Positions 2,576-44,774 of a DNA stretch of 46,578 nucleotides are shown in pieces. The notes beneath the pieces were generated by a model that was not told the DNA's origin, searched no databases, and saw nothing but the letters and a program-made list of their open reading frames with translations. A program made the position numbers and the translations under genes. The first letter of the stretch is position 1, and each line of letters begins with the position of its first letter. The DNA lies in assembly GCA_002269645.1 (NCBI GenBank), contig NIVC01001352.1, positions 1 through 46,578 on the forward strand. Reading direction: 5' to 3'. The DNA is from Macrostomum lignano. Lineage: Eukaryota.

Positions 2576-5500
2576 TTACATGGATTCGGCCTCATTACTT
2601 TCGGTAATGAGAATATCGCCTCCGGGGAACAAAGCCTGTTGCGACTGAGTTCTCTCGGGTCTCAAATTATATTGATGTCTTTGTTCGGCTCTTTCATTCT
2701 CACCTATCTCTAATGCGTCATCTTCCTCAGCTAACTCAGTTCTTTCACTGTCTGTTGACTCATCTTCTATCTCATTCTGCTCAATTTCCTCTTGCTCAAC
2801 TTCTTCCTCAATTGGCTCGATCTCTCTTGCTCTCCACTGAATTCTTTCGTCTTCCGAACTGTCAGTTTCTATTATTGGCTCTAAATGATTTTTCTTACTA
2901 ATCTGTTGCCTTCCCTTATTTTTCGGCTCTCTCTTTTTCTGTTGTTCTCTCTGCCTTCCCCTATTTGTAGGTTCCGTCTCTTTATTTGGTTCATTCGGCA
3001 AATCTATTTGCGAGTTGGGTACTGGAGTGAGGTTGTTTCGATGTACGAGCATCTTCTCGCCAATCCTTACTCCGTCTATTTCTCGCTGTACTCGAAATAC
3101 TGTTTCGGAAAGTCTCGCAAGGACTCTGAATGCTGCTCTTTTCTTGCGGTGAAATTTATGGCTTTCTTCACTGTGTAATTGCGGATTGTTAATCAATGCG
3201 AGGCATCCAACCGGTACATGCTTCGGTGGCTTGTTCTCAGCATTGTCCTCCTCTCTACGGTCCTTTACCTTCTCTAGCTTCTTCTGCACGAGTTTCTGTG
3301 CTTCTTCGAGCCTTTCAGCATGGTTTAGCACATAGCTCGGATAATCGTGATACTGCTTTGGCCTTCGAATAATACTGTCTATCCTAAGATCTGCCTCCCT
3401 ACCAAATAGCAGGTAGTGCGGCGTGAATCCGGTGGTCTGGTTCACACTAGTGCGCACAGCTACCAGAGCTGCGGGAATTAGCAAATCCCAGTCGGAATGA
3501 TCTTTCTCTACTAGACAAGTTACTATTGACTTTATTTGTTTATTGAATCTTTCGACTAGTCCGTTACTTTGTGCGTGATACGGTGTGGTGCATGTATGCT
3601 TGATGCCATACATCCTACAAAATGCTTGGAACTGACGGCTGACGAATGTCTTGCCATTGTCAGTGTGGATCCACTGGCATTGTCCGTATTCGCTAAAGAT
3701 TCTTTCTTGTATGATCTTAATCACTATATCCGATTTCTGATTTCGCACTGGGAACGCAAATGGGAACCGAGTAGTGCTATCTACTACTGTTAGTACGTAG
3801 CGATGACCTCTTCGACTCTCTTTTGAGATCGGCCCAATCAGGTCAATATGGATCCTATGAAACGGTTCGCATATTGGAAAGGACTGCACTGGCGCCTTCA
3901 CCTTATTTCCTGCCTTACTCTCTAAACAAGGAATACATTCCGAAATATACTTCTCTACTGCAGTTGCTAGTCCTGGTCGCCAAAATCGATCGCGCACACG
4001 TTGCAGTGTTTTATCACGACCTAGGTGACCTGAGAGAGGACTGTCATGCAACTCTCGGAATACTTTTTTCTCAATGTTCTCTGGCAACACGACCTTCTGT
4101 GTCCCGTCTTCGTCTATGGTCAATAACTCGTCTTCTAGCTTCATCTGCTTATAGAACTTTAACATCTGCTTCAACTCTCTAGTTGCATCCTTTGGTAATT
4201 TCGGTTCTCGGATACTCTGCTCCTTCCAGGCTATCAGCGTCCTCATAGAAGGGTCGTCACGCTGAGCTGATGTCAGCTGCTCCTTCTTAAGCGGGACGAA
4301 GAGATAGTCGGTTAGGAGTTTCCGACAAGCGGTCTCACTAACGTTTTCTTCCGCATCCTCATACACTTCTTCATCATCAGCGAAGTAATCGCTGGCGTCC
4401 TCATACTCTTCTTCTTCATCTTCGAAATATTCTCTTGCATCTTCGTACTCTTCATCGTCTTCTACTTCTTCTCTAATTGGATCAGTCTGACAGCTCTGGT
4501 GCTTACAGCTTGAGATATTGGTCTGACTTCGGTTTACCGTAACGGTAGGAAGTACTGGACCTATCTCAGCTTTAGTGCACTTTTCTGCCTTAGTCTCCTG
4601 ATTATCTTTTAATCTTTCTGCGGGTCGTCTGGATAGTCCGTCTGCATTGGTGTGTTTAGCACCGCTGCGGTGTTCAATGTCATACTGAAACTCACTTAAT
4701 CTCTCAATCCATCTACCGAGGATTCCCTGCGCTTCAGTCTGGCGAAGTAGCCATAGGATAGCGCGATGATCTGTTCTTGCCAGGAATCTCTTTCCGATGA
4801 GATAGAATCGGAAGTGTTTCATTCCGTCAACTAATGCTAGCAATTCTTTTCTTGTGATTGGATACCTCTTTTCTGATTCCTTCATGGCTCTGCTAAAGTA
4901 CGCGATGGGCCTTTCAACTCCATCGGATTGTATCTGACCTAAGCAGGCCCCAATCCTGTCATCACTCGCGTCGGTGTCAAGCACCATTCGAACTTCTTCA
5001 TTGTCAGTGAACTCTGGGTATGCTAAAACTTCTGTTGATGTCATCTTCTGCTTTAGTAGCGCAAAGGCTTCATCATGACTCTTAGTCCATTTCTCCCTAA
5101 AATTCTGAATTCCCTTCTTAGTTAGCTGGAAGAGCGGGTGCGCTGCTTCCGCGTAATTCTTCACGAACCTACAGTAATAGTTACATAGACCTAGGAAGCT
5201 TCTTAATTCTTTAACGTCCTTAGGCGTCGGCCATGACTGAATTGCTTCTATCTTAGCTGGATCTGTCTTAATTCCTTCTCTACCAACTATGTGTCCTAGA
5301 TATTTAAGCTCTTTTTGAAATAGATTACATTTCTTCGGCCTTAATTTTAATCCGGCTGTTACTAGTCTCTGGAACACTTCTCGTAGGTGATCCAGGTGAT
5401 CCTCAAATTTCGTTGAGTAAGTTACTATGTCGTCAATGTACGACATGGCGAATTTATGTTGAATCCCCATCAATACTAGGTTCATTAGTCTCTGGAATGT

Positions 5501-7141
5501 TCCAGGTGCATTAGATAGTCCCTGCGCCATGACCTGATACTCGAACTGTCCCATAGTCAAAGTCGAAAATGCTGTCATGAATTTATCCTCTTCCTTAATT
5601 GGTACCTGCCAATAACCTGAATTTAAGTCTAAACTACTGAAATATTGACTTCCCGTTAGATGAGAGAAAGTTTCCTGAATATTCGGCAACGGATACGGAT
5701 AGTAGTTAACTCGAGAGTTCAAGACTCTGAAATCGCTGACAATCCTAATAGTTCCATCTTTCTTAGGCACTATTACTAATGGCGTCGAATAAGTGCTATA
5801 GCACGGCCTTATTAAATTTTTAGCGAGCATATCGTCTAACTGTTCGTCTACTTGCTTCTGCAGATGTGGTGGTATTCTGCGAGTAGGTATTCTGACTGGC
5901 GTCGTATCCTTCAGCGAGATTTCGTGGGTCACTAGATGAGTGAGGCCCATCTCCTGGCTTGTCTGCGAGAATGCTTCCCTATTCTCTTTCAGCAGCTCTA
6001 CTACCTTTTCTTTCTGCTCTGATGATAGCTCATCTGAGATGTTAATCTCCTGAATCCATTCATCAGTACGAGTATCAGCAGTTTCAGCGCATTTCGCGGA
6101 TTTAACTTGTCCGGTGTCATTCTTGGTAACGAAGTACGTTAGTTCTTCGGCTTTTAATGGCTTGGCAATGCCTACCATTGCTGATTTCCTAATCACTACG
6201 TCGTTATTCTGCCTATTGATCACTTCTACCACACCAGTTCCATTACTCATCGTTAATAAGGTTGGAACCATATCCAGTGTGTCATCTTTTACTGAGATAT
6301 GTCCTTTGGTGGTCTCAATCATCATTGGCGTACCGAAGTTCATTTCAGCTCGTTTAGCTAGTTTGACTGGTATTCTTAAAGCACTATTAGCTGGCACAAC
6401 TACCTTGTCGTGACAGTAGACTCGGCACACTCGTACCGGCAATTTAGTAAACTGCATCGGAATGCAAACTCCGGTTTTTAAAATCATCATTCCTTTGTCA
6501 AAACTCATACTCTCGCAAAAGTTCATAAAGAAATCCATTCCTAGGATATCATCACACTCATGGTTGCACAGCAGGAAGTCGGTCACAATTTCTACTTCTC
6601 CGAACATTATCTTTATTGTCACTTCTCCTTCGATTCGCACAATCGATCCATCGAATGTGGTCACTCTTTGATCAGATGGCCTGATCTCTTGTTCTCTACA
6701 TACTCTTCTCCAAGTACTTTTACTTAGAAAGTTACGACCGGCTCCTGTGTCTAACAGAAAGCGAATATTCTGCTTGCGGATCTTTCCGTCAATGACTGCT
6801 TCTCGGCCTTTCTTCTCTGTGCCGGCATCTAAACTTGTCTCTTCTTCTGCACTTTCATTCAGCTTGACGTACTCTTCTGGCTTCGGAGTACTTTTCTTGG
6901 GTAAGCAATCAGGTGCACGCGTAGTATTTACATTCGGTACTGTATGTGCATTCGCATGTTTTTTGTTGGGTTTTCTAAACTTATTATAATTTTCGCATGA
7001 TTTGTACTTGTACTGCTTATTAACTTTGTACGCATTATTAACTTTGTACGCATTATTTACAAATTCAGAGGCCTGAATTTTGCTCTGGATTTCGCTAGAG
7101 GGACGTGGCCTCGTTATTCGGCCCTCGCTTCTCAGTTTCCC
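2576..7141 (-). CDS. pol: Pol polyprotein (aspartic protease, reverse transcriptase, RNase H, integrase), translated as Gag-Pol by -1 frameshift
   Basis: I translated the frame by hand from 7141 to the tracked ORF start (6664) and found no stop. It contains protease FLLDTGAG (Asp codon 6749-6751), RT YIDD, RNase H LDTDAS, integrase HHCC (LHDSPLSGH...CIPC) and D,D,E (IHIDLIGP / HTDNG / GLVERFN). Confidence 0.96.
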   Translation of the reverse strand, partial: GKLRSEGRITRPRPSSEIQSKIQASEFVNNAYKVNNAYKVNKQYKYKSCENYNKFRKPNKKHANAHTVPNVNTTRAPDCLPKKSTPKPEEYVKLNESAEEETSLDAGTEKKGREAVIDGKIRKQNIRFLLDTGAGRNFLSKSTWRRVCREQEIRPSDQRVTTFDGSIVRIEGEVTIKIMFGEVEIVTDFLLCNHECDDILGMDFFMNFCESMSFDKGMMILKTGVCIPMQFTKLPVRVCRVYCHDKVVVPANSALRIPVKLAKRAEMNFGTPMMIETTKGHISVKDDTLDMVPTLLTMSNGTGVVEVINRQNNDVVIRKSAMVGIAKPLKAEELTYFVTKNDTGQVKSAKCAETADTRTDEWIQEINISDELSSEQKEKVVELLKENREAFSQTSQEMGLTHLVTHEISLKDTTPVRIPTRRIPPHLQKQVDEQLDDMLAKNLIRPCYSTYSTPLVIVPKKDGTIRIVSDFRVLNSRVNYYPYPLPNIQETFSHLTGSQYFSSLDLNSGYWQVPIKEEDKFMTAFSTLTMGQFEYQVMAQGLSNAPGTFQRLMNLVLMGIQHKFAMSYIDDIVTYSTKFEDHLDHLREVFQRLVTAGLKLRPKKCNLFQKELKYLGHIVGREGIKTDPAKIEAIQSWPTPKDVKELRSFLGLCNYYCRFVKNYAEAAHPLFQLTKKGIQNFREKWTKSHDEAFALLKQKMTSTEVLAYPEFTDNEEVRMVLDTDASDDRIGACLGQIQSDGVERPIAYFSRAMKESEKRYPITRKELLALVDGMKHFRFYLIGKRFLARTDHRAILWLLRQTEAQGILGRWIERLSEFQYDIEHRSGAKHTNADGLSRRPAERLKDNQETKAEKCTKAEIGPVLPTVTVNRSQTNISSCKHQSCQTDPIREEVEDDEEYEDAREYFEDEEEEYEDASDYFADDEEVYEDAEENVSETACRKLLTDYLFVPLKKEQLTSAQRDDPSMRTLIAWKEQSIREPKLPKDATRELKQMLKFYKQMKLEDELLTIDEDGTQKVVLPENIEKKVFRELHDSPLSGHLGRDKTLQRVRDRFWRPGLATAVEKYISECIPCLESKAGNKVKAPVQSFPICEPFHRIHIDLIGPISKESRRGHRYVLTVVDSTTRFPFAFPVRNQKSDIVIKIIQERIFSEYGQCQWIHTDNGKTFVSRQFQAFCRMYGIKHTCTTPYHAQSNGLVERFNKQIKSIVTCLVEKDHSDWDLLIPAALVAVRTSVNQTTGFTPHYLLFGREADLRIDSIIRRPKQYHDYPSYVLNHAERLEEAQKLVQKKLEKVKDRREEDNAENKPPKHVPVGCLALINNPQLHSEESHKFHRKKRAAFRVLARLSETVFRVQREIDGVRIGEKMLVHRNNLTPVPNSQIDLPNEPNKETEPTNRGRQREQQKKREPKNKGRQQISKKNHLEPIIETDSSEDERIQWRAREIEPIEEEVEQEEIEQNEIEDESTDSERTELAEEDDALEIGENERAEQRHQYNLRPERTQSQQALFPGGDILITESNEAESM

Positions 7142-8157
7142 TGGTTATTCGAGCGGTTCTGCATCTGCGGAGCGTTCTGCTTGGCACTCCTGCACTGCTT
7201 TGCAATGTGGCCAATCTTCCCGCAGTTATAGCAAGTCTGCGGCTGTTGTCTCGGCTGACCCTGGTTTGGGTGCTGCTGCCGGGCGAACATTTGCTGTCGC
7301 GCCTGCGCTCCATTGCCATACTGTGGCGGAACGGGCTGCGGCTGCTGGGGCTGGTATCTCTGTGGATACTGCCTGGCTGCCTGAGCGTACGAATAATTTT
7401 GCGAAAACTGCTGCTGATTATTCTGCATCTTCTCCTCTCTTAGCTCCTGCAAAGCTCTCTTCTGCTGTTCAATCTCGAACTTCTGCTTCCTAATGATCTC
7501 TTCCAGTCTTTCTTGTTCAGCCTTCCTCTGCTGTTCTTGTTCTTCCTCGCTCTTAGCTACTCTCATGCCTGAATTCCTGCGTGACATGTTCCAGGCTGCT
7601 TCCATTCTCCTCAGCATTCTTCTGGCTTCCTGCAGATTAGCTGGCTGAGCGAAGATCAGTTTCTCGCGGGTTTCAGGTGGAACTCTCACACCCTTGATGA
7701 ACTGTTCCACGATCTCCTCTTCCCGCTGTTCCACAGTCATGTTTGGGAAGGCTCGCGAAGCTAGCTCAATTAGACAATCGGTGTACGATTCTACTAACTC
7801 ATTTCTGCCTTGCATTCGGCCTCTAAATTCTTCCCTAAACTCTGCTGAACTGCCAATTCTGCCAAAGCGTTCTACAAGTCTTTCTTTAAATTCTTCGTAC
7901 TCCAGATCATCTGGGAGGTTCAAACGCTGAACTGCTGCGAATGCAGTAGCCAGGTCGAGGTTCGCGAGAAGCTCTTGCTTCCGGTTATCCTCTTCGATAC
8001 CCTCAGCTTCACAGCGCTGGTCGAAGGCAGTCAACCAGATCCTAATATCTTGACCTGGCGTGAATTTCTGAATTTTCACATGCCTTTGTGGTCCTAACTC
8101 TAACCTGTTTCTTAGCTCTTCAGCTAGCATCGCAATCGCATCATTTGCGTTGGCCAT
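7132..8157 (-). CDS. gag: Gag (capsid-like domain, coiled coil, Gln-rich linker, CCHC zinc knuckle)
   Basis: 341-aa ORF with a retrotransposon gag-like core (YEEFKERLVERFG...RMQGRNELVESY...EQFIKG) and CYNCGKIGHIAKQC. Located between the PBS and pol. Confidence 0.93.
   Translation of the reverse strand: MANANDAIAMLAEELRNRLELGPQRHVKIQKFTPGQDIRIWLTAFDQRCEAEGIEEDNRKQELLANLDLATAFAAVQRLNLPDDLEYEEFKERLVERFGRIGSSAEFREEFRGRMQGRNELVESYTDCLIELASRAFPNMTVEQREEEIVEQFIKGVRVPPETREKLIFAQPANLQEARRMLRRMEAAWNMSRRNSGMRVAKSEEEQEQQRKAEQERLEEIIRKQKFEIEQQKRALQELREEKMQNNQQQFSQNYSYAQAARQYPQRYQPQQPQPVPPQYGNGAQARQQMFARQQHPNQGQPRQQPQTCYNCGKIGHIAKQCRSAKQNAPQMQNRSNNQGN
7135..7141 (-). promoter_or_regulatory. -1 programmed ribosomal frameshift slippery site G GGA AAC
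   Basis: gag ends CAG GGA AAC TGA. The heptamer is in the X XXY YYZ register and pol is in the -1 frame. The -1 frame has a TAA two codons upstream, which restricts the shift to this site. A candidate stem (GAGGG...CCCTC) begins 8 nt downstream. Confidence 0.85.
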
Positions 8158-8205
8158 CTCTGATCTTGTCAGGTTCTGCTATTTCTCTAGTCTTCTAAGG
8201 TTTTT

Positions 8206-8266
8206 GCCGTTTCTCTGATCTAATTCGCGCCGTTTCTCTGATCTAATTCTCGCCGTTTCTCTGATC
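8206..8266. repeat. Three 23-bp-period repeats (GCCGTTTCTCTGATC core) in the leader, just 3' of the PBS
   Basis: Cores at 8206-8220, 8229-8243 and 8252-8266. Confidence 0.85.
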
Positions 8267-8281
8267 CCACCGCTGCCACCA
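8264..8281 (-). promoter_or_regulatory. Primer binding site complementary to the tRNA-Leu 3' end
   Basis: Minus strand TGGTGGCAGCGGTGGGAT is the 18-nt complement of ...ATCCCACCGCTGCCACCA, the 3' end of metazoan tRNA-Leu(AAG/UAG class) including CCA. The tRNA sequence is recalled, not searched. Confidence 0.88.
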
Positions 8282-8398
8282 AAAGCTGTCGTAGGGCTCT
8301 TATTTAATCCTTTGTCTAGCCTTACTTGCTGCCACCAAAGTTGTTACAAAGCTATTTCTTCTTAACAATTCTACTGGTTGTTAATTGTAATTCTACTG

Positions 8399-8659
8399 GT
8401 AGCGCATGTACTTCTATTGGTAGCGTATGTACTTCTATTGATAGCGTATGTACTTCTATTGTACTTTCTGGCCTGAGCGGTCTAATAGCACTGTCTATTC
8501 TATTCCTATGCTTCCCCTAATATTATTCTCTCAGTCCTGGGCGTTCCCTGGATCAGAGGGTCACAGCTTATGCTCTTTCTCTGCCCTGAGGCGATCTTCT
8601 CTCGTTATGAGGCGGTTCTCCTGCCCTGAGGCGAATTTACAATTTACTGCCCTGAGGCG
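8399..8659. repeat. Short tandem repeats between the PBS and the LTR identity block
   Basis: Three 21-bp units (RTAGCGYATGTACTTCTATTG) at 8399-8461. Three CTGCCCTGAGGCG at 8581, 8621 and 8647. Confidence 0.85.
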
Positions 8660-8669
8660 GTTTCTCGCT

Positions 8670-8999
8670 TGTAGCGGTTTCTGATACTCCCAATTGGGGT
8701 TCTTATACTCTAAGAAATGATTAAGTCTTTAAGCGATTTCAATATTTAGAACGAACTAAATTTGCTTATCGAAAACCGAAAGGCAGCAAACGGTTGCTTC
8801 CTCAAGTCTGCTCAGCGTGTCTATTTATACCCAAAATTCGTTATAGTTTAAACAAAATAATAATTGCAGAAATATTTTTGCAAACCACAACATTCAAACA
8901 AATATTTCGCGCAGATTTGAATAAAGGTTTTTCTAAGAAAGGCAAACATAAAACGAGTAAAATTTAAAAGTATTAGAGCTATTATTAATGCCTGTCTCA
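8670..8999 (-). repeat. 5' LTR (minimal extent; may extend to ~8287), with TATA box
   Basis: TG...CA ends on the minus strand (8999 to 8670). TATAAATA on the minus strand at 8822-8829. Near-identical to 408-735. Confidence 0.88.
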
Positions 9000-9924
9000 A
9001 TAATAACTTATAGACCATTGTATTTGATAGTCACAATCTCAATATATTATCTTACAAATAGGCCTATAATGTCTAAGATAGAATTCCAAATAAGAAGCAC
9101 ATTCAGTTCAAGTTACAAGGGGTTTCTAATTGTATAGGTGAACCAAAGGTTTAGTCTATTGTGGAATGCGGGATGCTTGTTGGTTCAGTTTTAGTGAGTC
9201 AATTTAGCAGTTTTGGCATTTGGGTTAAGACCCTAATTGTGTCAATCAAAGGTTGTTCTACAAAAATAGAAGGCAAAAAGGAGGGAAAAGGGAGGCAAGC
9301 TTCTTGCTTGGTTGACATGGGCTTTTTTAATACTTTTTGGTCTTGATCACATTGGATGGTATATAGCTACTTTTCATTGGTTTGGGTTGTGTCCTCAGCT
9401 TTTGCTAGTTGGAGCACATTCATTGGTTAAAATACATTCATTCTATATAAGAACTTTTTAGAGCCAAAATGTGTCACTTCATATTATTAGATATTTTATC
9501 TATTTTTTAGATCTTTTATTTACTATTATACTATATCTATAATAATTCTAAGCCTAAGAAGGTTGGGCAAAATCTAGATTATTAGCTATATATGGCTTAA
9601 GAAACCTTTAAATAAAATTTAGGGTATTTAGTTACTTTTTGTAATAGTAATATGGTTTACTTTATATCTTAGTCTTATTTTATGTGTTCTTTGCTCTTTT
9701 TTTCTAAAAATATTTGTTATTTTTTCTTTCTTTATTCTTTTATTTACTTATCTTTGTTTATTAATAGAAAACCACTTTTATAACAATAATAATAATAATA
9801 ATAACAACAAAAATATGAAGTCATTATTAGAGTAGGACATATTAGATAGGCCCTAGTACATTGCAGAGCCTAAAAGTTAAAATCAATGTTAGGTGCCCAT
9901 GCCCTAGTATTGCATACTAGGTAG

Positions 9925-12900
9925 CAGTGGCATAGTCAGGGGGAGGCCCCCCATTGCCTGGGGGGTTGGGTTGGGTGTGGTGGGTACCAAAAACCATGAG
10001 GCAATTGAGTGCTTGCAGCGCCAAAATGAGTGCCTGCAGCACCAAAATGAGTGCCTGCAGCACCAAAATGAGTGCCTGCAGCACCAAAATGAGTGCCTGC
10101 AGCACCAAAATGAGTGCCTGCAGCACCAAAATGAGTGCCTGCAGTGCCAAAATGAGTGCCTGCAGCGCCAAAATGAGTGCCTGCAGCACCAAAATGAGTG
10201 CCTGCAGCATCAAAATGAGTGCCTCCAGCACCAAAATGAGTGCCTCCAGCACCAAAATGAGTGCCTGTAGTGCCAAAATGAGTGCCTGCAGTGCCAAAAT
10301 GAGTGCCTGCAGCACCAAAATGAGTGCCTGCAGCACCAAAATGAGTGCCTGCAGCACCAAAATGAGTGCCTGCAACGCCAAAATGAGTGCCTGCAGCACC
10401 AAAATGAGTGCCTGCAGTGCCAAAATGAGTGCCTGCAGCGCCAAAATGAGTGCCTGCAGCACCAAAATGAGTGCCTCCAGCACCAAAATGAGTGCCTGCA
10501 GTGCCAAAATGAGTGCCTGCAGTGCCAAAATGAGTGCCTGCAGCACCAAAATGAGTGCCTGTAGTGCCAAAATGAGTGCCTGCAGCACCAAAATGAGTGC
10601 CTGCGGTGCCAAAATGAGTGCCTGCAGCACCAAAATGAGTGCCTGCGGTGCCAAAATGAGTGCCTGTAGTGCCAAAATGAGTGCCTGCAGCACCAAAATG
10701 AGTGCCTGCGGTGCCAAAATGAGTGCCTGCAGCACCAAAATGAGTGCTTCCAGCACCAAAATGAGTGCCTCCAGCACCAAAATGAGTGCCTGTAGTGCCA
10801 AAATGAGTGCCTGCAGTGCCAAAATGAGTGCCTGCAGCACCAAAATGAGTGCTTCCAGCACCAAAATGAGTGCCTCCAGCACCAAAATGAGTGCCTGTAG
10901 TGCCAAAATGAGTGCCTGCAGTGCCAAAATGAGTGCCTGCAGCACCAAAATGAGTGCCTGCAGCACCAAAATGAGTGCCTCCAGCACCAAAATGAGTGCC
11001 TGCAGTGCCAAAATGAGTGCCTGCAGTGCCAAAATGAGTGCCTGCAGCACCAAAATGAGTGCCTGTAGTGCCAAAATGAGTGCCTGCAGCACCAAAATGA
11101 GTGCCTGCGGTGCCAAAATGAGTGCCTGCAGCACCAAAATGAGTGCCTGCAGCACCAAAATGAGTGCCTGCAGTGCCAAAATGAGTGCCTGCAGCGCCAA
11201 AATGAGTGCCTGCAGCACCAAAATGAGTGCCTCCAGCACCAAAATGAGTGCCTGCAGCACCAAAATGAGTGCCTCCAGCACCAAAATGAGTGCCTCCAGC
11301 ACCAAAATGAGTGCCTGCAGTGCCAAAATGAGTGCCTGCAGTGCCAAAATGAGTGCCTGCAGCGCCAAAATGAGTGCCTGCGGTGCCAAAATGAGTGCCT
11401 GTAGTGCCAAAATGAGTGCCTGCAGCACCAAAATGAGTGCCTGCGGTGCCAAAATGAGTGCCTGCAGCACCAAAATGAGTGCCTGCAGCACCAAAATGAG
11501 TGCTTCCAGCACCAAAATGAGTGCCTCCAGCACCAAAATGAGTGCCTGCAGTGCCAAAATGAGTGCCTGCAGCGCCAAAATGAGTGCCTGCAGCACCAAA
11601 ATGAGTGCCTCCAGCACCAAAATGAGTGCCTGCAGTGCCAAAATGAGTGCCTGCAGCACCAAAATGAGTGCCTGCAGCACCAAAATGAGTGCCTGTAGTG
11701 CCAAAATGAGTGCCTGCAGCACCAAAATGAGTGCCTGCGGTGCCAAAATGAGTGCCTGCAGCACCAAAATGAGTGCCTGCGGTGCCAAAATGAGTGCCTG
11801 TAGTGCCAAAATGAGTGCCTGCAGCACCAAAATGAGTGCCTGCGGTGCCAAAATGAGTGCCTGCAGCACCAAAATGAGTGCTTCCAGCACCAAAATGAGT
11901 GCCTCCAGCACCAAAATGAGTGCCTGTAGTGCCAAAATGAGTGCCTGCAGTGCCAAAATGAGTGCCTGCAGCACCAAAATGAGTGCTTCCAGCACCAAAA
12001 TGAGTGCCTCCAGCACCAAAATGAGTGCCTGTAGTGCCAAAATGAGTGCCTGCAGTGCCAAAATGAGTGCCTGCAGCACCAAAATGAGTGCCTGCAGCAC
12101 CAAAATGAGTGCCTCCAGCACCAAAATGAGTGCCTGCAGTGCCAAAATGAGTGCCTGCGGTGCCAAAATGAGTGCCTGCAGCACCAAAATGAGTGCCTGT
12201 AGTGCCAAAATGAGTGCCTGCAGCACCAAAATGAGTGCCTGCGGTGCCAAAATGAGTGCCTGCAGCACCAAAATGAGTGCCTGCAGCACCAAAATGAGTG
12301 CCTGCAGTGCCAAAATGAGTGCCTGCAGCGCCAAAATGAGTGCCTGCAGCACCAAAATGAGTGCCTCCAGCACCAAAATGAGTGCCTGCAGCACCAAAAT
12401 GAGTGCCTCCAGCACCAAAATGAGTGCCTCCAGCACCAAAATGAGTGCCTGCAGTGCCAAAATGAGTGCCTGCAGTGCCAAAATGAGTGCCTGCAGCACC
12501 AAAATGAGTGCCTGCGGTGCCAAAATGAGTGCCTGTAGTGCCAAAATGAGTGCCTGCAGCACCAAAATGAGTGCCTGCGGTGCCAAAATGAGTGCCTGCA
12601 GCACCAAAATGAGTGCCTGCAGCACCAAAATGAGTGCTTCCAGCACCAAAATGAGTGCCTCCAGCACCAAAATGAGTGCCTGCAGTGCCAAAATGAGTGC
12701 CTCCAGCACCAAAATGAGTGCCTGTAGTGCCAAAATGAGTGCCTGCAGTGCCAAAATGAGTGCCTGCAGCACCAAAATGAGTGCCTCCAGCACCAAAATG
12801 AGTGCCTGTAGTGCCAAAATGAGTGCCTGCAGCGCCAAAATGAGTGCCTGCAGCACCAAAATGAGTGCCTCCAGCACCAAAATGAGTGCCTGCAGCACCA

Positions 12901-15900
12901 AAATGAGTGCCTCCAGCACCAAAATGAGTGCCTCCAGCACCAAAATGAGTGCCTGCAGTGCCAAAATGAGTGCCTGCAGTGCCAAAATGAGTGCCTGCAG
13001 CACCAAAATGAGTGCCTGTGGTGCCAAAATGAGTGCCTGTAGTGCCAAAATGAGTGCCTGCAGCACCAAAATGAGTGCCTGCGGTGCCAAAATGAGTGCC
13101 TGCAGCACCAAAATGAGTGCCTGCAGCACCAAAATGAGTGCTTCCAGCACCAAAATGAGTGCCTCCAGCACCAAAATGAGTGCCTGCAGTGCCAAAATGA
13201 GTGCCTCCAGCACCAAAATGAGTGCCTGTAGTGCCAAAATGAGTGCCTGCAGCACCAAAATGAGTGCCTGCGGTGCCAAAATGAGTGCCTGCAGCACCAA
13301 AATGAGTGCCTGCAGCACCAAAATGAGTGCCTGCAGTGCCAAAATGAGTGCCTGCAGCGCCAAAATGAGTGCCTGCAGCACCAAAATGAGTGCCTCCAGC
13401 ACCAAAATGAGTGCCTGCAGCACCAAAATGAGTGCCTCCAGCACCAAAATGAGTGCCTCCAGCACCAAAATGAGTGCCTGCAGTGCCAAAATGAGTGCCT
13501 GCAGTGCCAAAATGAGTGCCTGCAGCACCAAAATGAGTGCCTGCGGTGCCAAAATGAGTGCCTGTAGTGCCAAAATGAGTGCCTGCAGCACCAAAATGAG
13601 TGCCTGCGGTGCCAAAATGAGTGCCTGCAGCACCAAAATGAGTGCCTGCGGTGCCAAAATGAGTGCCTGTAGTGCCAAAATGAGTGCCTGCAGCACCAAA
13701 ATGAGTGCCTGCGGTGCCAAAATGAGTGCCTGCAGCACCAAAATGAGTGCTTCCAGCACCAAAATGAGTGCCTCCAGCACCAAAATGAGTGCCTGTAGTG
13801 CCAAAATGAGTGCCTGCAGTGCCAAAATGAGTGCCTGCAGCACCAAAATGAGTGCTTCCAGCGCCAAAATGAGTGCCTCCAGCACCAAAATGAGTGCCTG
13901 TAGTGCCAAAATGAGTGCCTGCAGTGCCAAAATGAGTGCCTGCAGCACCAAAATGAGTGCCTGCAGCACCAAAATGAGTGCCTCCAGCACCAAAATGAGT
14001 GCCTGCAGTGCCAAAATGAGTGCCTGCAGTGCCAAAATGAGTGCCTGCAGCACCAAAATGAGTGCCTGTAGTGCCAAAATGAGTGCCTGCAGCACCAAAA
14101 TGAGTGCCTGCGGTGCCAAAATGAGTGCCTGCAGCACCAAAATGAGTGCCTGCAGCACCAAAATGAGTGCCTGCAGTGCCAAAATGAGTGCCTGCAGCGC
14201 CAAAATGAGTGCCTGCAGCACCAAAATGAGTGCCTGCAGCACCAAAATGAGTGCCTGCAGCACCAAAATGAGTGCCTGCAGCACCAAAATGAGTGCCTCC
14301 AGCACCAAAATGAGTGCCTGTAGTACCAAAATGAGTGCCTGCAGCACCAAAATGAGTGCTTCCAGCACCAAAATGAGTGCCTCCAGCACCAAAATGAGTG
14401 CCTGTAGTGCCAAAATGAGTGCCTGCAGCACCAAAATGAGTGCCTGCAGCACCAAAATGAGTGCTTCCAGCACCAAAATGAGTGCCTCCAGCACCAAAAT
14501 GAGTGCCTGTAGTGCCAAAATGAGTGCCTGCAGTGCCAAAATGAGTGCCTGCAGCACCAAAATGAGTGCCTCCAGCACCAAAATGAGTGCCTGTAGTGCC
14601 AAAATGAGTGCCTGCAGCGCCAAAATGAGTGCCTGCAGCACCAAAATGAGTGCCTCCAGCACCAAAATGAGTGCCTGCAGCACCAAAATGAGTGCCTCCA
14701 GCACCAAAATGAGTGCCTCCAGCACCAAAATGAGTGCCTGCAGTGCCAAAATGAGTGCCTGCAGTGCCAAAATGAGTGCCTGCAGCACCAAAATGAGTGC
14801 CTGCGGTGCCAAAATGAGTGCTTGTAGTGCCAAAATGAGTGCCTGCAGCACCAAAATGAGTGCCTGCGGTGCCAAAATGAGTGCCTGCAGCACCAAAATG
14901 AGTGCCTGCAGCACCAAAATGAGTGCTTCCAGCACCAAAATGAGTGCCTCCAGCACCAAAATGAGTGCCTGCAGTGCCAAAATGAGTGCCTCCAGCACCA
15001 AAATGAGTGCCTGTAGTGCCAAAATGAGTGCCTGCAGCACCAAAATGAGTGCCTGCGGTGCCAAAATGAGTGCCTGCAGCACCAAAATGAGTGCCTGCAG
15101 CACCAAAATGAGTGCCTCCAGCACCAAAATGAGTGCCTGCAGCACCAAAATGAGTGCCTCCAGCACCAAAATGAGTGCCTCCAGCACCAAAATGAGTGCC
15201 TGCAGTGCCAAAATGAGTGCCTGCAGTGCCAAAATGAGTGCCTGCAGCGCCAAAATGAGTGCCTGCAGCACCAAAATGAGTGCCTCCAGCACCAAAATGA
15301 GTGCCTGCAGCACCAAAATGAGTGCCTCCAGCACCAAAATGAGTGCCTCCAGCACCAAAATGAGTGCCTGCAGTGCCAAAATGAGTGCCTGCAGTGCCAA
15401 AATGAGTGCCTGCAGCACCAAAATGAGTGCCTGCGGTGCCAAAATGAGTGCCTGTAGTGCCAAAATGAGTGCCTGCAGCACCAAAATGAGTGCCTGCGGT
15501 GCCAAAATGAGTGCCTGCAGCACCAAAATGAGTGCCTGCGGTGCCAAAATGAGTGCCTGTAGTGCCAAAATGAGTGCCTGCAGCACCAAAATGAGTGCCT
15601 GCGGTGCCAAAATGAGTGCCTGCAGCACCAAAATGAGTGCTTCCAGCACCAAAATGAGTGCCTCCAGCACCAAAATGAGTGCCTGTAGTGCCAAAATGAG
15701 TGCCTGCAGTGCCAAAATGAGTGCCTGCAGCACCAAAATGAGTGCTTCCAGCGCCAAAATGAGTGCCTCCAGCACCAAAATGAGTGCCTGTAGTGCCAAA
15801 ATGAGTGCCTGCAGTGCCAAAATGAGTGCCTGCAGCACCAAAATGAGTGCCTGCAGCACCAAAATGAGTGCCTCCAGCACCAAAATGAGTGCCTGCAGTG

Positions 15901-18900
15901 CCAAAATGAGTGCCTGCAGTGCCAAAATGAGTGCCTGCAGCACCAAAATGAGTGCCTGTAGTGCCAAAATGAGTGCCTGCAGCACCAAAATGAGTGCCTG
16001 CGGTGCCAAAATGAGTGCCTGCAGCACCAAAATGAGTGCCTGCAGCACCAAAATGAGTGCCTGCAGTGCCAAAATGAGTGCCTGCAGCGCCAAAATGAGT
16101 GCCTGCAGCACCAAAATGAGTGCCTCCAGCACCAAAATGAGTGCCTGCAGCACCAAAATGAGTGCCTCCAGCACCAAAATGAGTGCCTCCAGCACCAAAA
16201 TGAGTGCCTGCAGTGCCAAAATGAGTGCCTGCAGTGCCAAAATGAGTGCCTGCAGCACCAAAATGAGTGCCTGCGGTGCCAAAATGAGTGCCTGTAGTGC
16301 CAAAATGAGTGCCTGCAGCACCAAAATGAGTGCCTGCGGTGCCAAAATGAGTGCCTGCAGCACCAAAATGAGTGCCTGCAGCACCAAAATGAGTGCTTCC
16401 AGCACCAAAATGAGTGCCTCCAGCACCAAAATGAGTGCCTGCAGTGCCAAAATGAGTGCCTGCAGTGCCAAAATGAGTGCCTGCAGCACCAAAATGAGTG
16501 CCTGCAGCACCAAAATGAGTGCCTGCAGCACCAAAATGAGTGCCTCCAGCACCAAAATGAGTGCCTGTAGTACCAAAATGAGTGCCTGCAGCACCAAAAT
16601 GAGTGCTTCCAGCACCAAAATGAGTGCCTCCAGCACCAAAATGAGTGCCTGTAGTGCCAAAATGAGTGCCTGCAGCACCAAAATGAGTGCCTGCAGCACC
16701 AAAATGAGTGCCTCCAGCACCAAAATGAGTGCCTCCAGCACCAAAATGAGTGCCTGTAGTGCCAAAATGAGTGCCTGCAGTGCCAAAATGAGTGCCTGCA
16801 GCACCAAAATGAGTGCCTCCAGCACCAAAATGAGTGCCTGTAGTGCCAAAATGAGTGCCTGCAGCGCCAAAATGAGTGCCTGCAGCACCAAAATGAGTGC
16901 CTCCAGCACCAAAATGAGTGCCTGCAGCACCAAAATGAGTGCCTCCAGCACCAAAATGAGTGCCTCCAGCACCAAAATGAGTGCCTGCAGTGCCAAAATG
17001 AGTGCCTGCAGTGCCAAAATGAGTGCCTGCAGCACCAAAATGAGTGCCTGCGGTGCCAAAATGAGTGCCTGTAGTGCCAAAATGAGTGCCTGCAGCACCA
17101 AAATGAGTGCCTGCGGTGCCAAAATGAGTGCCTGCAGCACCAAAATGAGTGCCTGCAGCACCAAAATGAGTGCTTCGAGCACCAAAATGAGTGCCTCCAG
17201 CACCAAAATGAGTGCCTGCAGTGCCAAAATGAGTGCCTCCAGCACCAAAATGAGTGCCTGTAGTGCCAAAATGAGTGCCTGCAGCACCAAAATGAGTGCC
17301 TGCGGTGCCAAAATGAGTGCCTGCAGCACCAAAATGAGTGCCTGCAGCACCAAAATGAGTGCCTGCAGTGCCAAAATGAGTGCCTGCAGCGCCAAAATGA
17401 GTGCCTGCAGCACCAAAATGAGTGCCTCCAGCACCAAAATGAGTGCCTGCAGCACCAAAATGAGTGCCTCCAGCACCAAAATGAGTGCCTCCAGCACCAA
17501 AATGAGTGCCTGCAGTGCCAAAATGAGTGCCTGCAGTGCCAAAATGAGTGCCTGCAGCACCAAAATGAGTGCCTGCGGTGCCAAAATGAGTGCCTGTAGT
17601 GCCAAAATGAGTGCCTGCAGCACCAAAATGAGTGCCTGCGGTGCCAAAATGAGTGCCTGCAGCACCAAAATGAGTGCCTGCAGCACCAAAATGAGTGCTT
17701 CCAGCACCAAAATGAGTGCCTCCAGCACCAAAATGAGTGCCTGCAGTGCCAAAATGAGTGCCTGCAGTGCCAAAATGAGTGCCTGCAGCACCAAAATGAG
17801 TGCCTGCAGCACCAAAATGAGTGCCTGCAGCACCAAAATGAGTGCCTCCAGCACCAAAATGAGTGCCTGTAGTACCAAAATGAGTGCCTGCAGCACCAAA
17901 ATGAGTGCTTCCAGCACCAAAATGAGTGCCTCCAGCACCAAAATGAGTGCCTGTAGTGCCAAAATGAGTGCCTGCAGCACCAAAATGAGTGCCTGCAGCA
18001 CCAAAATGAGTGCCTGCAGCACCAAAATGAGTGCTTCCAGCACCAAAATGAGTGCCTCCAGCACCAAAATGAGTGCCTGCAGTGCCAAAATGAGTGCCTG
18101 CAGCGCCAAAATGAGTGCCTGCAGCACCAAAATGAGTGCCTGTAGTGCCAAAATGAGTGCCTGCAGCGCCAAAATGAGTGCCTGCAGCACCAAAATGAGT
18201 GCCTCCAGCACCAAAATGAGTGCCTGCAGCACCAAAATGAGTGCCTCCAGCACCAAAATGAGTGCCTCCAGCACCAAAATGAGTGCCTGCAGTGCCAAAA
18301 TGAGTGCCTGCAGTGCCAAAATGAGTGCCTGCAGCACCAAAATGAGTGCCTGCGGTGCCAAAATGAGTGCCTGTAGTGCCAAAATGAGTGCCTGCAGCAC
18401 CAAAATGAGTGCCTGCGGTGCCAAAATGAGTGCCTGCAGCACCAAAATGAGTGCCTGCAGCACCAAAATGAGTGCTTCCAGCACCAAAATGAGTGCCTCC
18501 AGCACCAAAATGAGTGCCTGCAGTGCCAAAATGAGTGCCTGCAGTGCCAAAATGAGTGCCTGCAGCACCAAAATGAGTGCCTGCAGCACCAAAATGAGTG
18601 CCTGCAGCACCAAAATGAGTGCCTCCAGCACCAAAATGAGTGCCTGTAGTACCAAAATGAGTGCCTGCAGCACCAAAATGAGTGCTTCCAGCACCAAAAT
18701 GAGTGCCTCCAGCACCAAAATGAGTGCCTGTAGTGCCAAAATGAGTGCCTGCAGCACCAAAATGAGTGCCTGCAGCACCAAAATGAGTGCTTCCAGCACC
18801 AAAATGAGTGCCTCCAGCACCAAAATGAGTGCCTGTAGTGCCAAAATGAGTGCCTGCAGTGCCAAAATGAGTGCCTGCAGCACCAAAATGAGTGCCTGCA

Positions 18901-19214
18901 GCACCAAAATGAGTGCCTGCAGCACCAAAATGAGTGCCTCCAGCACCAAAATGAGTGCCTGTAGTACCAAAATGAGTGCCTGCAGCACCAAAATGAGTGC
19001 TTCCAGCACCAAAATGAGTGCCTCCAGCACCAAAATGAGTGCCTGTAGTGCCAAAATGAGTGCCTGCAGCACCAAAATGAGTGCTTCCAGCACCAAAATG
19101 AGTGCCTCCAGCACCAAAATGAGTGCCTGCAGCACCAAAAGTGGCAATGGCATAAGGCATGGCCAGCTAGGCCAACCTGCCTCCTCCCAATTGAAATTCC
19201 TGGCTACGCCATTG
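9925..19214. mobile_element. Non-autonomous hAT-type DNA transposon (MITE-like) carrying a giant internal tandem array
   Basis: Left TIR CAGTGGCATAGTCAGG (9925-9940). Right TIR reverse complement CAATGGCGTAGCCAGG (19199-19214), 13/16 match. Perfect 8-bp TSD CTAGGTAG at 9917-9924 and 19215-19222; 8-bp TSDs are typical of hAT. No transposase sequence. Confidence 0.85.
10005..19139. repeat. 21-bp tandem array (consensus ATGAGTGCCTGCAGCACCAAA), 435 units
   Basis: 9135 bp = 435 x 21. The unbroken ORFs show there are no frameshifting indels. A small set of recurring variants is confined to about 8 positions of the unit. Confidence 0.98.
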
Positions 19215-19479
19215 CTAGGTAGTCAATGTATTGATGGGTTTGGGCCTAACCTTGACCCCATTTAAATAGGCATTATAATTATAAGGTGAGCAAGAGGGTA
19301 TCTTGAATAGGTTAGGGACATAAGCCCTTGGCCTAGATCATGTGACTTACCAGTTGAAGTTGCCACTGGCATAGGATAGGCCTAATAGATAGGTGCTGCA
19401 GCTTGGCCTAATCATATAAGGTCTCTTTTCCTAAAGCATTATTATAGATAGAGCATTAGCAAAGTGATTGACTTTAGCT

Positions 19480-20516
19480 TCCCTAATACTAAAACTGACG
19501 CGATGTTTGTCTGTGTGTGTGTGTGTTGCAAGTGAACTCCTACAATACTTGCAAGTCAGCGTCGAAACTTATATGGGAAAATTGCAAATTTTCCGTATCA
19601 GGCTTTAGACTATTTTAATTTTTAATTTTCACATTTTAACATCCCTAAAAAAGCAGAAAACTGCTTTTTTAACCCCCAATAACCTTCTTTGGCCACTCTG
19701 CCTGGGGCTGCAGCCAGTTTGTAAAAATAGCCACCCCAACCTCCGCCCGCGGGCCGCTGTGTATTGAGGGGTGGTGGGTGCGATCCCTAATACTAAAACT
19801 GACGCGATGTTTGTCTGTGTGTGTGTGTGTTGCAAGTGAACTCCTACAATACTTGCAAGTCAGCGTCGAAACTTATATGGGAAAATTGCAAATTTTCCGT
19901 ATCAGGCTTTAGACTATTTTAATTTTTAATTTTCACATTTTAACATCCCTAAAAAAGCAGAAAACTGCTTTTTTAACCCCCAATAACCTTCTTTGGCCAC
20001 TCTGCCTGGGGCTGCAGCCAGTTTGTAAAAATAGCCACCCCAACCTCCGCCCGCGGGCCGCTGTGTATTGAGGGGTGGTGGGTGCGATCCCTAATACTAA
20101 AACTGACGCGATGTTTGTCTGTGTGTGTGTGTGTTGTAAGTGAACTCCTACAATTCTGCCAAGTCAGCGTCGAAGCTTATATGGGAAAACTGCAAATTTT
20201 CCGGATCAGGCTTCCCTAATACTAAAACTGACGCGATGTTTGTCTGTGTGTGTGTGTGTTGTAAGTGAACTCCTACAATTCTGCCAAGTCAGCGTCGAAA
20301 CTTATATGGGAAAACTGCAAATTTTCCGGATCAGGCTTTAGGCTATTTTAATTTTTAATTTTCACATTTTAACATCGCTAAAAAAGCAGAAAACTGCTTT
20401 TTTAACCCCCAATAACCTTCTTTGGCCACTCTGCCTGGGGCTGCAGCCAGTTTTTAAAAATAGCCACCCCAACCTCCGCCCGCGGGCCGCTGTGTATTGA
20501 GGGGTGGTGGGTGCGC
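19480..20516 (+). mobile_element. Head-to-tail array of a Helitron/Helentron-like non-autonomous 5' segment
   Basis: Four copies starting TCCCTAATACTAAAAC at 19480, 19784, 20088 and 20213. Periods are 304, 304 and 125 (truncated), then a longer copy. Each has a (GT)n tract near the 5' end and a GGAAAA..GCA..TTTTCC hairpin. No canonical hairpin+CTRR 3' end was identified. Confidence 0.5.
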
Positions 20517-20978: not shown

Positions 20979-22093
20979 AATAGATAAAGTTGGGCGTATT
21001 GGAAGGGTGTCTGCCGCTGCGTATTGGAGGGTTGATTTAGATTGCGCAACCGTTTATTTAACTTTAAATAAGACTGATACTGTCTGACTGAGAAATGGTT
21101 TGCGCAATTAATTGATTCAATTAATTCAACACGCAGCTCTGTGCAGCTCTAACCCTAACCCTAACCAATGAATTCTGAGAGTTAAGTTCTTTTTGACAGA
21201 GAAAATTTCGATTGAGTCCAGTTTCACGGAGTATTCTGATGGTTTTCGGTTTCACGGAGAGGATTTCTTTTTCGTGGAGAGAATCTAGATGTATTTCTGT
21301 TTTACGGAGACGATTTTGATGGATGTCAGTTTCACTCAGAGGATTTCCATGGAGCCCAGTTTCACGGAGAGGATTTCTGTTTCGCGGAGAGGATTTCTGT
21401 TTCGCGGAGAGGATTTCTGTTTCACGGAGAGGATTTCTGTTTCACGGAGGGATTTTGATGGATTTGGTATCTTCAGTCAGTCAGTAAAGAGAGTAAAGAG
21501 AAGAGTGAAAAGAGAAGAGAGAAGAGATTATAGAAAAGAGAGTAGAGATGAGAGAGGACAGATTAGACATGACAGATGGGAGAGAAGAGGGGAGTAAGGC
21601 GGGAACGAAGAGGGAGAGAGAAGAAAAGAGGAGAGAGGAGATGAGAGGGAAGATATGAGATAGCAGAAGGAGACAGGAGAGATGAGAGGAGAGCGAAGAG
21701 AGGAGCTGAGAGTAGAGGAGAAAGAAATAGTGAGATGAGGCATGAGGGATGAGAGATGAGAGAGGAGAGAAGAGAGGAGAAAACAGGGGATAAAGGAGAC
21801 AGGAGAGAAAGACGAAAGACGAGGGAGAAGAGATAAATAAGGTGGTAGAGATGAGAGACGTGAGAGGAGAGAAAAGAGAAGAGAGGAGACAGAAGAATCT
21901 GAGTCTGGACAATGGCAGTCAGTTTTTGCGAACAGGGAAAACAAGATATGGTTTTATGGCTTTACAGAGGATTTGGAGATGATTTGGAAGATGGGATTCA
22001 AGTCATGGAATTTGAGCTGATGGATTTCAGGGAATGGAATTCCGGTGATGGGAGTTCTTCCCCTTTCTCCTCCAGAGGAGGAGTTGGCCTCGT
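20979..22093 (+). repeat. Copy A of a tandemly duplicated composite repeat (telomeric hexamers, TTTCACGGAGAGGA repeats, GA-rich tract, 3' hairpin)
   Basis: Starts AATAGATAAAGTTGGG. (TAACCC)2TAACC at 21150-21166. Hairpin CTCCTCC-AGA-GGAGGAG at 22067-22083, then CTCGT. Confidence 0.75.
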
Positions 22094-23956
22094 AATAGAT
22101 AAAGTTGGGGGGAGGGTTCAACTTCTCACTGCTGCTGTGTATTGGAGGGTTGATTTAGATTGACTGACTGACTGTGAAATCAGTTGCGCAATGAATTGAT
22201 TCAATTTGTTCAATATTTTTATCAGTGCCTTTTAACACGAAGCTGTGCGCAGTTCTAACCCTAACCCTAACCCTAACCCTAACCAATGAATCCGGAGAGT
22301 TGAGTTGTTTGACGGAAAAAAATCGATTGAGTCCAGTTTAGCGGAGACGATTTCAATGTTTTAATTTTGACGGAGAGGATTTCTGTTTCGTGGAGAGGAT
22401 TTCGATGGTGTTCAGTTTTACGAAGAGAGGATTTCGATGATGTTCAGCTTCACGGAGAGGATTTCTGTTTCGCGGAGATAATATACGATTGATTTCTGTT
22501 TTATGGAGACGATTTTGATGGATTTAAGTTTCAAGGAGAGGATTTCGAAGGAGTCCAGTTTCACGGAGAGGATTTCGAAGGAGTCCAGTTTCACGAAGAG
22601 GATTTCGATGGTTTTCAGTTGCACGGACAGGATTTCTGCTTCGCGGAGAAGATCTTGATAGATTTGGCATCTTCAATCAGTCAGAGAAGAGAGTAAAGAG
22701 AAGAATGAAAAGAGAAGAGAGATGAGATGATAGAAAACAGAGTAGAAATGAGTAGAGAAATTAGACATGACAGATGGGAGAGAAGAGGGGAGTAAGGCGG
22801 GAACGAAGGAGAGAGAAGAGAAGAGGAGAGAGGAGATGAAGAGAGAGGATATGAGAGAGGAGATATGAGATAGCAGAGAGGAGACAGGAGAGAGAAGAAA
22901 GGAGGGATAAGAGCGTACAGAGGCAATAGAAGAGAGGAGAGAGGTGAGAGGTGAGAGGAGAGAGATGAAAGATCAGAGATCAGAGATTTAAGAGAAGAAA
23001 GTAGTGAGGAGAAAGAAGAGGGTAAAGATGAGAGTGCAGAGAGGAGAGAAACGAGAGGAGACAGGTGGTAGAAAGGAGTGTAAAAACAGCAGATAAGAAA
23101 GGGGAGGGTGAGAGTGAGAGCATATAGGAAAGTGTAAAAGGGGAGCAGAGGAGAGAGAATAGATAAGTGAGTAGAGAAGAGATATGAGAGAGGAAAGACG
23201 AGGGGAGAGAGGAGACAGGAGAGAGTAAATTTGAAAGACCTGGGAGAAGAGATAAATAAGATAGTACAGATGAGAGGAGAGAGAGAGAGGAGAGATGAGA
23301 GATGCAATGAGAAAAGAGATGAGTGAGAAAATAAGAGAGAGAAGAGATTAGAAATTAGAGAAGAGATGAGGGGAGATGAGAGGAGAGAAGAGAGAATGGA
23401 GAGGAGAGAAAAGAGAGGAGAGGAGACATGTGATGCAGTAGAAAGGAGGGAAGAAAAATGGGAGATAAGAAAGGAGAGGTTGAGAGCGTATAAGAGATAC
23501 GAGAAATGAGAGCAGAGAGAAGAGAGAAAAGGGAAGAGAGAAAGTAGAGCGGAGACGATAGATAAGTGAGTAGAGATGAGATATGAGAGAGGAGAGAAAA
23601 GGGGAGAGATAAGATAGAAGATAGGAGAGTAGACAGGAGAGGGAGAAGAGAAAGACGAAAGACGAGGGAGAAGAGATAAATAAGGGAGTAGAGATAAATA
23701 AGAGAGTAGGGGTAGAGATGAGATGAGAGAGAGGAGAGAGAAGCGAGTCACGATAATAGCGAAGAGAGGAGAGAGTAGATATGAGAGACGTAAGAGTCTT
23801 TGAGCTATGGTCTTTGAAAGGTTTGTAAAGAATTTGGAGACGATTTGGAAGATGGGATTCAAGACATGGAATTTCAGTTGATGGATAATTCAGGGAATGG
23901 AATTCCGGTGATGGGAGTTCTTCCCCTTTCTCCTCCGAAGGAGGAGTTCCACTCGT
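22094..23956 (+). repeat. Copy B of the same composite repeat, with a longer GA-rich tract
   Basis: Same start. (TAACCC)4TAACC at 22256-22284. Hairpin CTCCTCC-GAA-GGAGGAG at 23930-23946, then CTCGT. Confidence 0.75.
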
Positions 23957-25046: not shown

Positions 25047-25229
25047 AGAACCGAAACTTCACAATGCCGAAATTCTGCATGGTCATCTGCATGGTGTATA
25101 TTATGTTTTCTACGATATGAAATTTCGGTCTTTTAAAAGCGCTCCATCATAAAAGATGAAACTGGTATATGACGTACTGGTTCGAGGTACTATCTTTAAG
25201 GCTATAGCTTCTCCAGGTAAATCTCGGGT

Positions 25230-28285: not shown

Positions 28286-28299
28286 CTGGCGGGGGAAGG

Positions 28300-44757: not shown

Positions 44758-44774
44758 GTGAGACTGCTGGTGGA

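Follow-up and report, generated by a model that had tools for sequence, protein, structure and literature searches.

Several mechanisms, namely unequal crossover, non-allelic homologous recombination, and slippage, have been reviewed for satellites derived from transposable elements (TEs) (PMC9659126). In Drosophila virilis, internal repeats of the transposon Tetris (TIR-220) have been amplified to kilobase-scale, satellite-like arrays of up to 66 copies (PMC4079207). Tandem repeats, usually up to ~6 units, are also carried by several MITEs (miniature inverted-repeat transposable elements), including DINE-1, SGM, PERI, and mini-me of Drosophila, pearl of Crassostrea virginica, and DTC84 of Donax trunculus, and it was proposed that palindromes in the core repeats of DTC84 promote changes in copy number (PMC3879986). 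Typical features of hAT transposons are an 8-bp target site duplication and the terminal motif YARNG (PMC3014272). The target preference nTnnnnAn has been given for Hermes, a hAT element; hAT transposases bind short subterminal repeats via BED domains, and in Hermes those that have been characterized are built on a core of 4 bp and occur dispersed over the two ends (PMC10368747). Here, we describe a 9.3-kb element that appears to belong to the hAT group and encloses a tandem array of 435 units of 21 bp. It lies at positions 9917-19222 (including its target site duplications) of a 46,578-nt stretch of Macrostomum lignano DNA (GenBank assembly GCA_002269645.1, contig NIVC01001352.1, positions 1 to 46,578 of the forward strand), the whole of which is called the window in the following.

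The locus is probably the product of a MITE-like insertion of the hAT type, in which one internal 21-bp segment was subsequently amplified to 9.1 kb between intact ends. The outermost feature is an 8-bp target site duplication, CTAGGTAG, which can be read directly at 9917-9924 and, as an exact copy, at 19215-19222. When both strands are checked, CTAGGTAG occurs twice in the window, and each occurrence directly abuts the terminus of an inverted repeat. The left terminal inverted repeat, CAGTGGCATAGTCAGG, is found at 9925-9940 on the plus strand and starts with CAGTG, and the right one, found at 19199-19214 on the minus strand, has the reverse complement CAATGGCGTAGCCAGG and starts with CAATG. 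The two 16-bp repeats agree at 13 of 16 positions, and all three mismatches are transitions. The degenerate inverted-repeat pattern has two sites in the window (0.2 expected), which are the two termini themselves. Between these ends and the array, the shell consists of a G-rich left arm of 81 bp (9925-10005) and a right arm of 74 bp (19141-19214), both on the plus strand and both counted with their inverted repeats, so that its non-array sequence amounts to 155 bp.

Direct alignment of the left arm with the right arm revealed an additional direct copy of the inverted-repeat head, CAATGGCATA, inside the right arm and only 4 bp after the array (19145-19154, plus strand). This copy matches the left repeat head at 9/10 positions and the reverse complement of the right repeat head also at 9/10. 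CA[A/G]TGGC[A/G]TA is the sole motif that recurs at the ends, being present in both inverted repeats and at 19145-19154. CAATGGCATA is a candidate subterminal repeat of the kind that is reiterated in hAT ends, and a role in transposase binding could be proposed for it by analogy with those of Hermes (PMC10368747). When the array-less 155-bp shell is folded, the termini pair and the pairing continues through GGGAGG/CCTCCC (z = -1.9). Inverted repeats longer than 16 bp, which would include this GGGAGG/CCTCCC stretch past a bulge of ~10 bp, were nevertheless rejected, since they can be seen in the fold but have no significant alignment.

The shell is real and, among the 21 tandem arrays of the window, specific to the 21-bp array, because the chance expectation, the shuffled sequences, and the control arrays all fall short of it. 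Within 250-bp flanks, 3.6e-6 exact 8-bp duplications that directly abut an inverted repeat of at least 13/16 are expected by chance. The combined score for inverted repeat and duplication was 16.5, compared with a maximum of 12.5 among 200 shuffles, and the identical scan on the 20 other tandem arrays of the window never gave a score above 12. A window-wide scan for 8-bp duplications beside inverted repeats of at least 12/14, for ends separated by 60-3000 bp (a range that does not reach the 9.3-kb element itself), found none, and likewise none in 20 shuffles.

The assignment to the hAT group follows from hallmarks only. The target site duplication has the 8 bp typical of hAT elements and is exact; the termini conform to YARNG (CAGTG on the left, CAATG on the right) and belong to short inverted repeats of 16 bp; and CTAGGTAG fits nTnnnnAn, with T at position 2 and A at position 7. 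The last of these is weak evidence because 1/16 of random octamers fit. The element is non-autonomous, since the 16 non-array open reading frames (ORFs) of the window that were scanned contain no hAT transposase domain. In these respects it resembles non-autonomous hAT elements and hAT MITEs such as the Anolis families, which have the same 8-bp duplication, YARNG termini, and short imperfect inverted repeats, and which likewise are without coding capacity and small, as the 155-bp element is here when its array is left aside (PMC3014272). The Drosophila element mar, as it is cited in a review (PMC9659126), is a further example of the same kind. For such elements, however, an internal array of 9.1 kb is far beyond the usual size. 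The 155-bp shell is small and non-coding, with inverted repeats and a duplication, as expected for a MITE, whereas with its array the 9.3-kb element is no longer "miniature." An earlier note on this DNA, made from the sequence alone, had proposed an array inside a non-autonomous DNA transposon of hAT type, with 13/16 inverted repeats, a perfect 8-bp duplication, and ends of ~80 and ~75 bp around 435 units between 9917 and 19222. The inverted repeats and the duplication were confirmed at these coordinates, the ends measure 81 and 74 bp around 435.0 units, in agreement with every figure of that note, and the assignment itself is supported by the inverted repeats, the duplication, the nTnnnnAn fit, and the YARNG termini.

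The array itself (10006-19140, plus strand) is detected by Tandem Repeats Finder as one array with a period of 21, 435.0 copies, 91% matches, and 0% indels over 9135 bp, the consensus unit being TGAGTGCCTGCAGCACCAAAA. As a long, homogeneous tandem array (9135 bp, 435 units, 91% identity, no indels), it has the properties of a satellite; by unit length, it is a minisatellite. All 435 units have the same orientation between the inverted repeats. When cut in register, they fall into 15 sequence types with a mean pairwise identity of 91.4%. At unit positions 1-7, 9, and 17-21, all 435/435 units are identical, and common variation is limited to positions 8, 10, 11, 12, 14, and 15, where it consists mainly of transitions among CG, TG, and CA dinucleotides. 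Positions 14-15 are TG or CA and rarely CG, the last being present in the edge unit, and positions 11-12 are CG, CA, TA, or TG. Constraint was considered as the cause of 12 invariant unit positions and rejected, as the location of three single-unit substitutions within positions 8-16 is not significant ((9/21)^3 = 0.08). As a side observation, the spectrum of the unit variants is CpG-decay-like, which would imply cytosine methylation or another CpG-specific germline mutation bias in the host.

The order of the unit variants along the array is a mosaic that is neither random nor a regular higher-order repeat. It contains irregular higher-order block duplications that are exact over many units, the longest comprising 43 units (903 bp), 36 units (756 bp), and 30 units (630 bp), followed by blocks of 30, 25, and 24 units and others, at irregular lags of 37-241 units. 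Both copies of the 43-unit block contain one unit of the rare variant I, which is absent from the remainder of the array. Six unit types (J-O) are singletons; three of them are recombinants of existing variants and the other three are single-unit substitutions, which are the only substitutions confined to one unit in the 9135 bp. The first unit at the left edge is the unique variant J, and we read this as edge units escaping homogenization. Variation at only six high-frequency positions in combination with the block mosaic is the signature of a few founder variants that were amplified.

The unit furthermore contains a quasi-palindrome, GTGC-CTGCA-GCAC, which includes CTGCAG. Folded as single-stranded DNA, a unit trimer reaches -13.7 kcal/mol, compared with -7.6 kcal/mol for shuffles (z = -3.3), which is consistent with slipped-strand intermediates. 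An A4 tract placed once per 21 bp, that is, every two helical turns, gives intrinsic DNA curvature. From this phasing of its A4 tracts, the array should be intrinsically curved.

We infer that the array expanded in place by slippage and unequal exchange. A short non-autonomous hAT-type transposon would first have inserted at CTAGGTAG and duplicated its target, after which one 21-bp internal segment would have been amplified in tandem, most probably at its position after the insertion. This may have started with replication slippage on the quasi-palindromic unit, and later, repeated unequal exchange between sister chromatids or homologues, together with gene conversion, would have copied blocks of tens of units. 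The outcome would be the present 435 units (9.1 kb) between intact ends, which could be called a TE-born minisatellite or incipient satellite. The last ~20 bp of the left arm, ACCAAAAACCATGAGGCAAT, directly precede the first unit and, read by eye rather than statistically, look like a degenerate or decayed proto-unit. Together with the left-edge unit, ACCAAAAACCATGAGGCAAT points to a unit that is probably native to the element and was not imported. Nothing suggests that the array serves the transposon or the host.

The array looks recently expanded and still turning over, because blocks as long as 903 bp have been duplicated exactly within it and no more than three substitutions are limited to one unit, and its final rounds of expansion are very recent relative to the 3/16 divergence of the inverted repeats. 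The recent expansion assumed in the earlier note is thereby supported. The intact target site duplication, which had been taken there as another sign of recency, is indeed intact but supports a young insertion only weakly, as the two inverted repeats have by now diverged at 3/16 positions.

Compared with the systems described above, the locus cleanly exemplifies an already known path by which a transposon gives rise to satellite DNA; it is not a new kind of element. As in Tetris, tandem repeats owned by a transposon have been amplified inside the element to the kilobase scale. In Tetris, however, repeats of ~220 bp lie within long foldback inverted repeats and their amplification is thought to disrupt the element (PMC4079207), whereas here the unit has 21 bp, the inverted repeats have 16 bp, and both ends and the duplication are intact. 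Foldback elements have long inverted repeats that contain the tandem repeats; the present element is not one of them because its inverted repeats are short. With the MITEs of the DTC84, pearl, and DINE-1 type, it shares the modular design of inverted-repeat cassette arms around central core repeats, and for those MITEs too a palindrome in the repeats was proposed as a hotspot of copy-number change and a link to satellite DNAs has been made (PMC3879986). They differ in having an AA duplication, a microsatellite at one end of the array, and units of ~100-170 bp in usually no more than 6 copies (PMC3879986), as opposed to an 8-bp duplication, no microsatellite at either array junction, and 435 copies of a 21-bp unit. 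Since the duplication is not AA and the microsatellite module is missing, the element is an analogue and not a member of the pearl/DINE-1 group. More generally, TE-derived minisatellites and satellites have in common with this locus that a transposon gives the seed, which is then expanded by slippage or exchange (PMC9659126). The double-insertion model is a further account of this kind (PMC5932611), but the unit found here is an internal sub-segment of a single insertion and neither a tandem dimer of whole elements nor derived from a target site duplication.

What distinguishes the locus is thus the degree: 435 copies of a very short unit of 21 bp, with both termini and the duplication intact. 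Most TE-derived satellites are known only by residual similarity after the element ends have been lost; here, both inverted repeats, the arms, and the duplication survive around 435 units. Because they survive, the start (a single insertion) and the end (a 9-kb array) can be read at one locus, and the history of the block duplications is preserved in the succession of unit variants. Should the genome contain sister copies with few units, they would form a natural series for the rate and the exchanges by which a repeat internal to a TE turns into a satellite. Taken by itself, the locus makes a good textbook case and is less a discovery.

Several points weigh against the explanation of a MITE-like insertion that was amplified in place. 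None of the 16 scanned ORFs contains a hAT, BED, or Dimer_Tnp_hAT domain. The mismatches between the inverted repeats (3/16 positions) may mean that the shell is old or that it was a poor substrate from the start. The data contain a single copy, so that family status and mobility are putative, and one copy alone cannot separate expansion in place from the transposition of an element that was already expanded. When the masked window was searched by BLAST with the two arms, the two flanks, and the empty site in joined form, nothing beyond the element was returned, and neither a paralogous nor an allelic empty site was found in the window. Finally, the length of the array is known from the assembly alone.

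The first alternative is that the long array was already present at transposition and that a non-autonomous hAT element of 9.3 kb moved as a whole with the array as its cargo. hAT transposases are able to move elements several kb long, and this general mobility as well as the perfect duplication and the presence of both termini would agree with such a history. We nevertheless regard it as improbable: the exact internal duplications of 903, 756, and 630 bp represent very recent change at the locus, while the inverted repeats have diverged at 3/16 positions, and arrays in mobile MITEs usually have up to ~6 units (PMC3879986). To a similarly small degree we expect that the length or the internal order of the array is partly an artifact of the assembly, the true array being inflated or collapsed. 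Arrays of 9 kb composed of near-identical 21-mers are hard to assemble, but in this one, the variants succeed one another in a rich, non-periodic order that includes unique markers (the units J-O and the variant I, which occurs twice) and can be anchored by long reads; it also has exactly 435.0 units without indels and clean junctions, and the window has no N. Even if such an artifact were present, it would change the length and not the architecture.

On a broader view, the shell and its 21-bp core could represent a mobile family that has spread the repeat genome-wide, with many loci bounded by the inverted repeats and containing from one to hundreds of units. If true, it would be a traceable, still-intact "satellite seeder" in a flatworm-like lineage, whose array possibly acts on the transposase. 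We consider this about as unlikely as the two preceding alternatives. Such a family would be of sufficient age that a related 21-mer has persisted at a M. lignano gene model (P0122, see below). In the window, a search for the inverted repeats with up to four substitutions found only the element itself, and no second copy of either arm was detected. Unit matches with up to three mismatches number 433 in the window, and the 200 of them that were listed run consecutively from 10006; as 2 of the 435 units have four mismatches, this number is consistent with all matches lying inside the array, and no 21-mer was found outside the array in the 46.6-kb window at this threshold, positions being checked among the 200 of 433 matches listed. 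One other M. lignano locus of 21 kb shared with the window only a 129-bp reverse-transcriptase match of 72% and had neither the inverted repeat nor the unit. Exact-pattern scans with the invariant dimer core and with both ends gave 0 matches in collections of metagenomes, prokaryotic genomes, and viruses, where this eukaryote is not to be expected, so that the negative carries little weight, and a literature search for strings of the unit core and the inverted repeats returned no relevant paper.

Slightly less credit still is due to the model put forward in the earlier note, according to which the 21-mer is an amplified subterminal motif bound by the transposase, so that the element titrates hAT transposase or seeds the satellite throughout the genome. 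BED-domain binding of subterminal repeats is known for hAT elements (PMC10368747), the element ends are intact, and a related 21-mer encoding heptads may exist at the gene model P0122. However, the unit resembles neither the inverted repeats nor the arms to a significant extent. The best local alignments between unit and arms, in either orientation, were equalled or beaten by 298/500 and 339/500 shuffles, and for 5-, 6-, and 7-mers that the arms have in common with the unit variants, P values were 0.04-0.33 over 12 tests, none of which survives correction. Moreover, CA[A/G]TGGC[A/G]TA is not present in the unit, the subterminal repeats of Hermes are motifs with a 4-bp core and not 21-mers (PMC10368747), and the window has neither a 21-mer outside the array, among the matches listed, nor another shell in the 60-3000 bp scan. 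With the unit-arm similarity at the level of shuffles and the end motif absent from the unit, the proposal of a seeder or transposase sink is left unsupported, although binding specificity is not something that a sequence reveals.

It is very improbable that the array is a protein-coding heptad repeat, although three of its six frames are open across the whole array (plus-strand MSACSTK and minus-strand ILVLQAL and FGAAGTH; ORFs of 3074-3103 amino acids) over 9.1 kb without indels, and half of the variable sites are, on our reading, third-codon positions in the plus frame. From first principles, a random 21-mer keeps a given frame open with a probability of (61/64)^7 = 0.71, and three open frames are unremarkable because this value predicts three to four. 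The ORF ends fall in the transposon arms and the flanks. A composite of the three translations, compared with 5.8 billion protein clusters, returned only two matches, neither of which is credible support. The first is P0121, a repeat protein of unknown origin that is unrelated. The second, P0122 (UniRef), is the gene model of a M. lignano delta-aminolevulinic acid dehydratase that is interrupted by six heptads, HFGAAGA/HFSAAGT, which match the minus-strand unit translation FGAAGTH. The simplest reading of these heptads is, in our view, that the annotation has run through an intron, which suggests that a related 21-bp repeat may be located in an intron of this gene. In the plus frame, Pfam matches were to assorted coiled-coil families, most of them without an individually significant stretch; the sole family above its curated cut-off has none. 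We read these matches as an effect of the 7-residue periodicity. The array is non-coding.

It is hardly credible that no transposon is involved and that the flanks of an ordinary minisatellite mimic inverted repeats and a duplication by chance: the single copy and the imperfect inverted repeats would speak for it, but with ~3.6e-6 such shells expected, a score above 200/200 shuffles and 20/20 control arrays, and the coincidence of three independent hAT hallmarks, the idea can be dismissed.

The hAT-like element begins 918 bp beyond the long terminal repeat (LTR) of a complete-looking Ty3/gypsy retrotransposon that occupies 393-8999 on the minus strand. Its LTRs (393-735 and 8658-8999) are 97.7% identical, and on the same strand it carries a gag ORF with a zinc knuckle (7132-8157), a pol ORF of 1362 amino acids with reverse-transcriptase, RNase H, and integrase domains (2576-6664), and an ORF of 329 amino acids without a Pfam match (1181-2170). 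With nearly identical LTRs and open gag and pol frames, this element is young. The best match of its reverse-transcriptase piece is a M. lignano protein with 60% identity, while others have ~50%. No RNA family was found in the window by Rfam at gathering thresholds. To the right of the hAT-like element, a mitochondrial ClpX-like AAA+ gene is represented by two exons on the minus strand (30514-30110 and 29519-29169) with 75% and 49% identity to an animal ClpX; a ClpX-like exon reaches at most 81% identity, to assorted animals. Directly after these exons follows a tandem array of 23 copies of a 36-bp unit (28299-29106), which lies inside an open frame of 295 amino acids.

The remainder of the window, 19480-46578, has an exceptional density of unrelated tandem arrays, both micro- and minisatellites, and no shell of inverted repeat and duplication was found around any of the other arrays of this region. 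They include a 304-bp unit in 2.4 copies (up to 3.4 when a diverged copy is counted; 19480-20512), 24 bp in 19 copies (25222-25682), 8 bp in 74 copies (34792-35377), 19 bp in 57 copies (38029-39115), 42 bp in 9.6 copies (40966-41371), a purine-only 12-bp unit in 148 copies (42186-43939), (GATA)106 (44773-45198), and 23 bp in 36 copies, which is cut by the end of the window (45752-46578). Two further arrays (21080-21484 and 22160-22684) consist of a related unit of ~20-30 bp, GTTTCACGGAGAGGATTTC..., and each is bracketed by short inverted motifs of the CTGACTGA type, followed by long purine tracts resembling (AAGAGAG)n. The bracket scores are within chance, and the two GTTTCACGGAGAGGATTTC arrays look like a duplicated composite repeat. 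At 22255-22284, a telomeric repeat of the TTAGGG type also occurs in a short interstitial run, (CTAACC)5.

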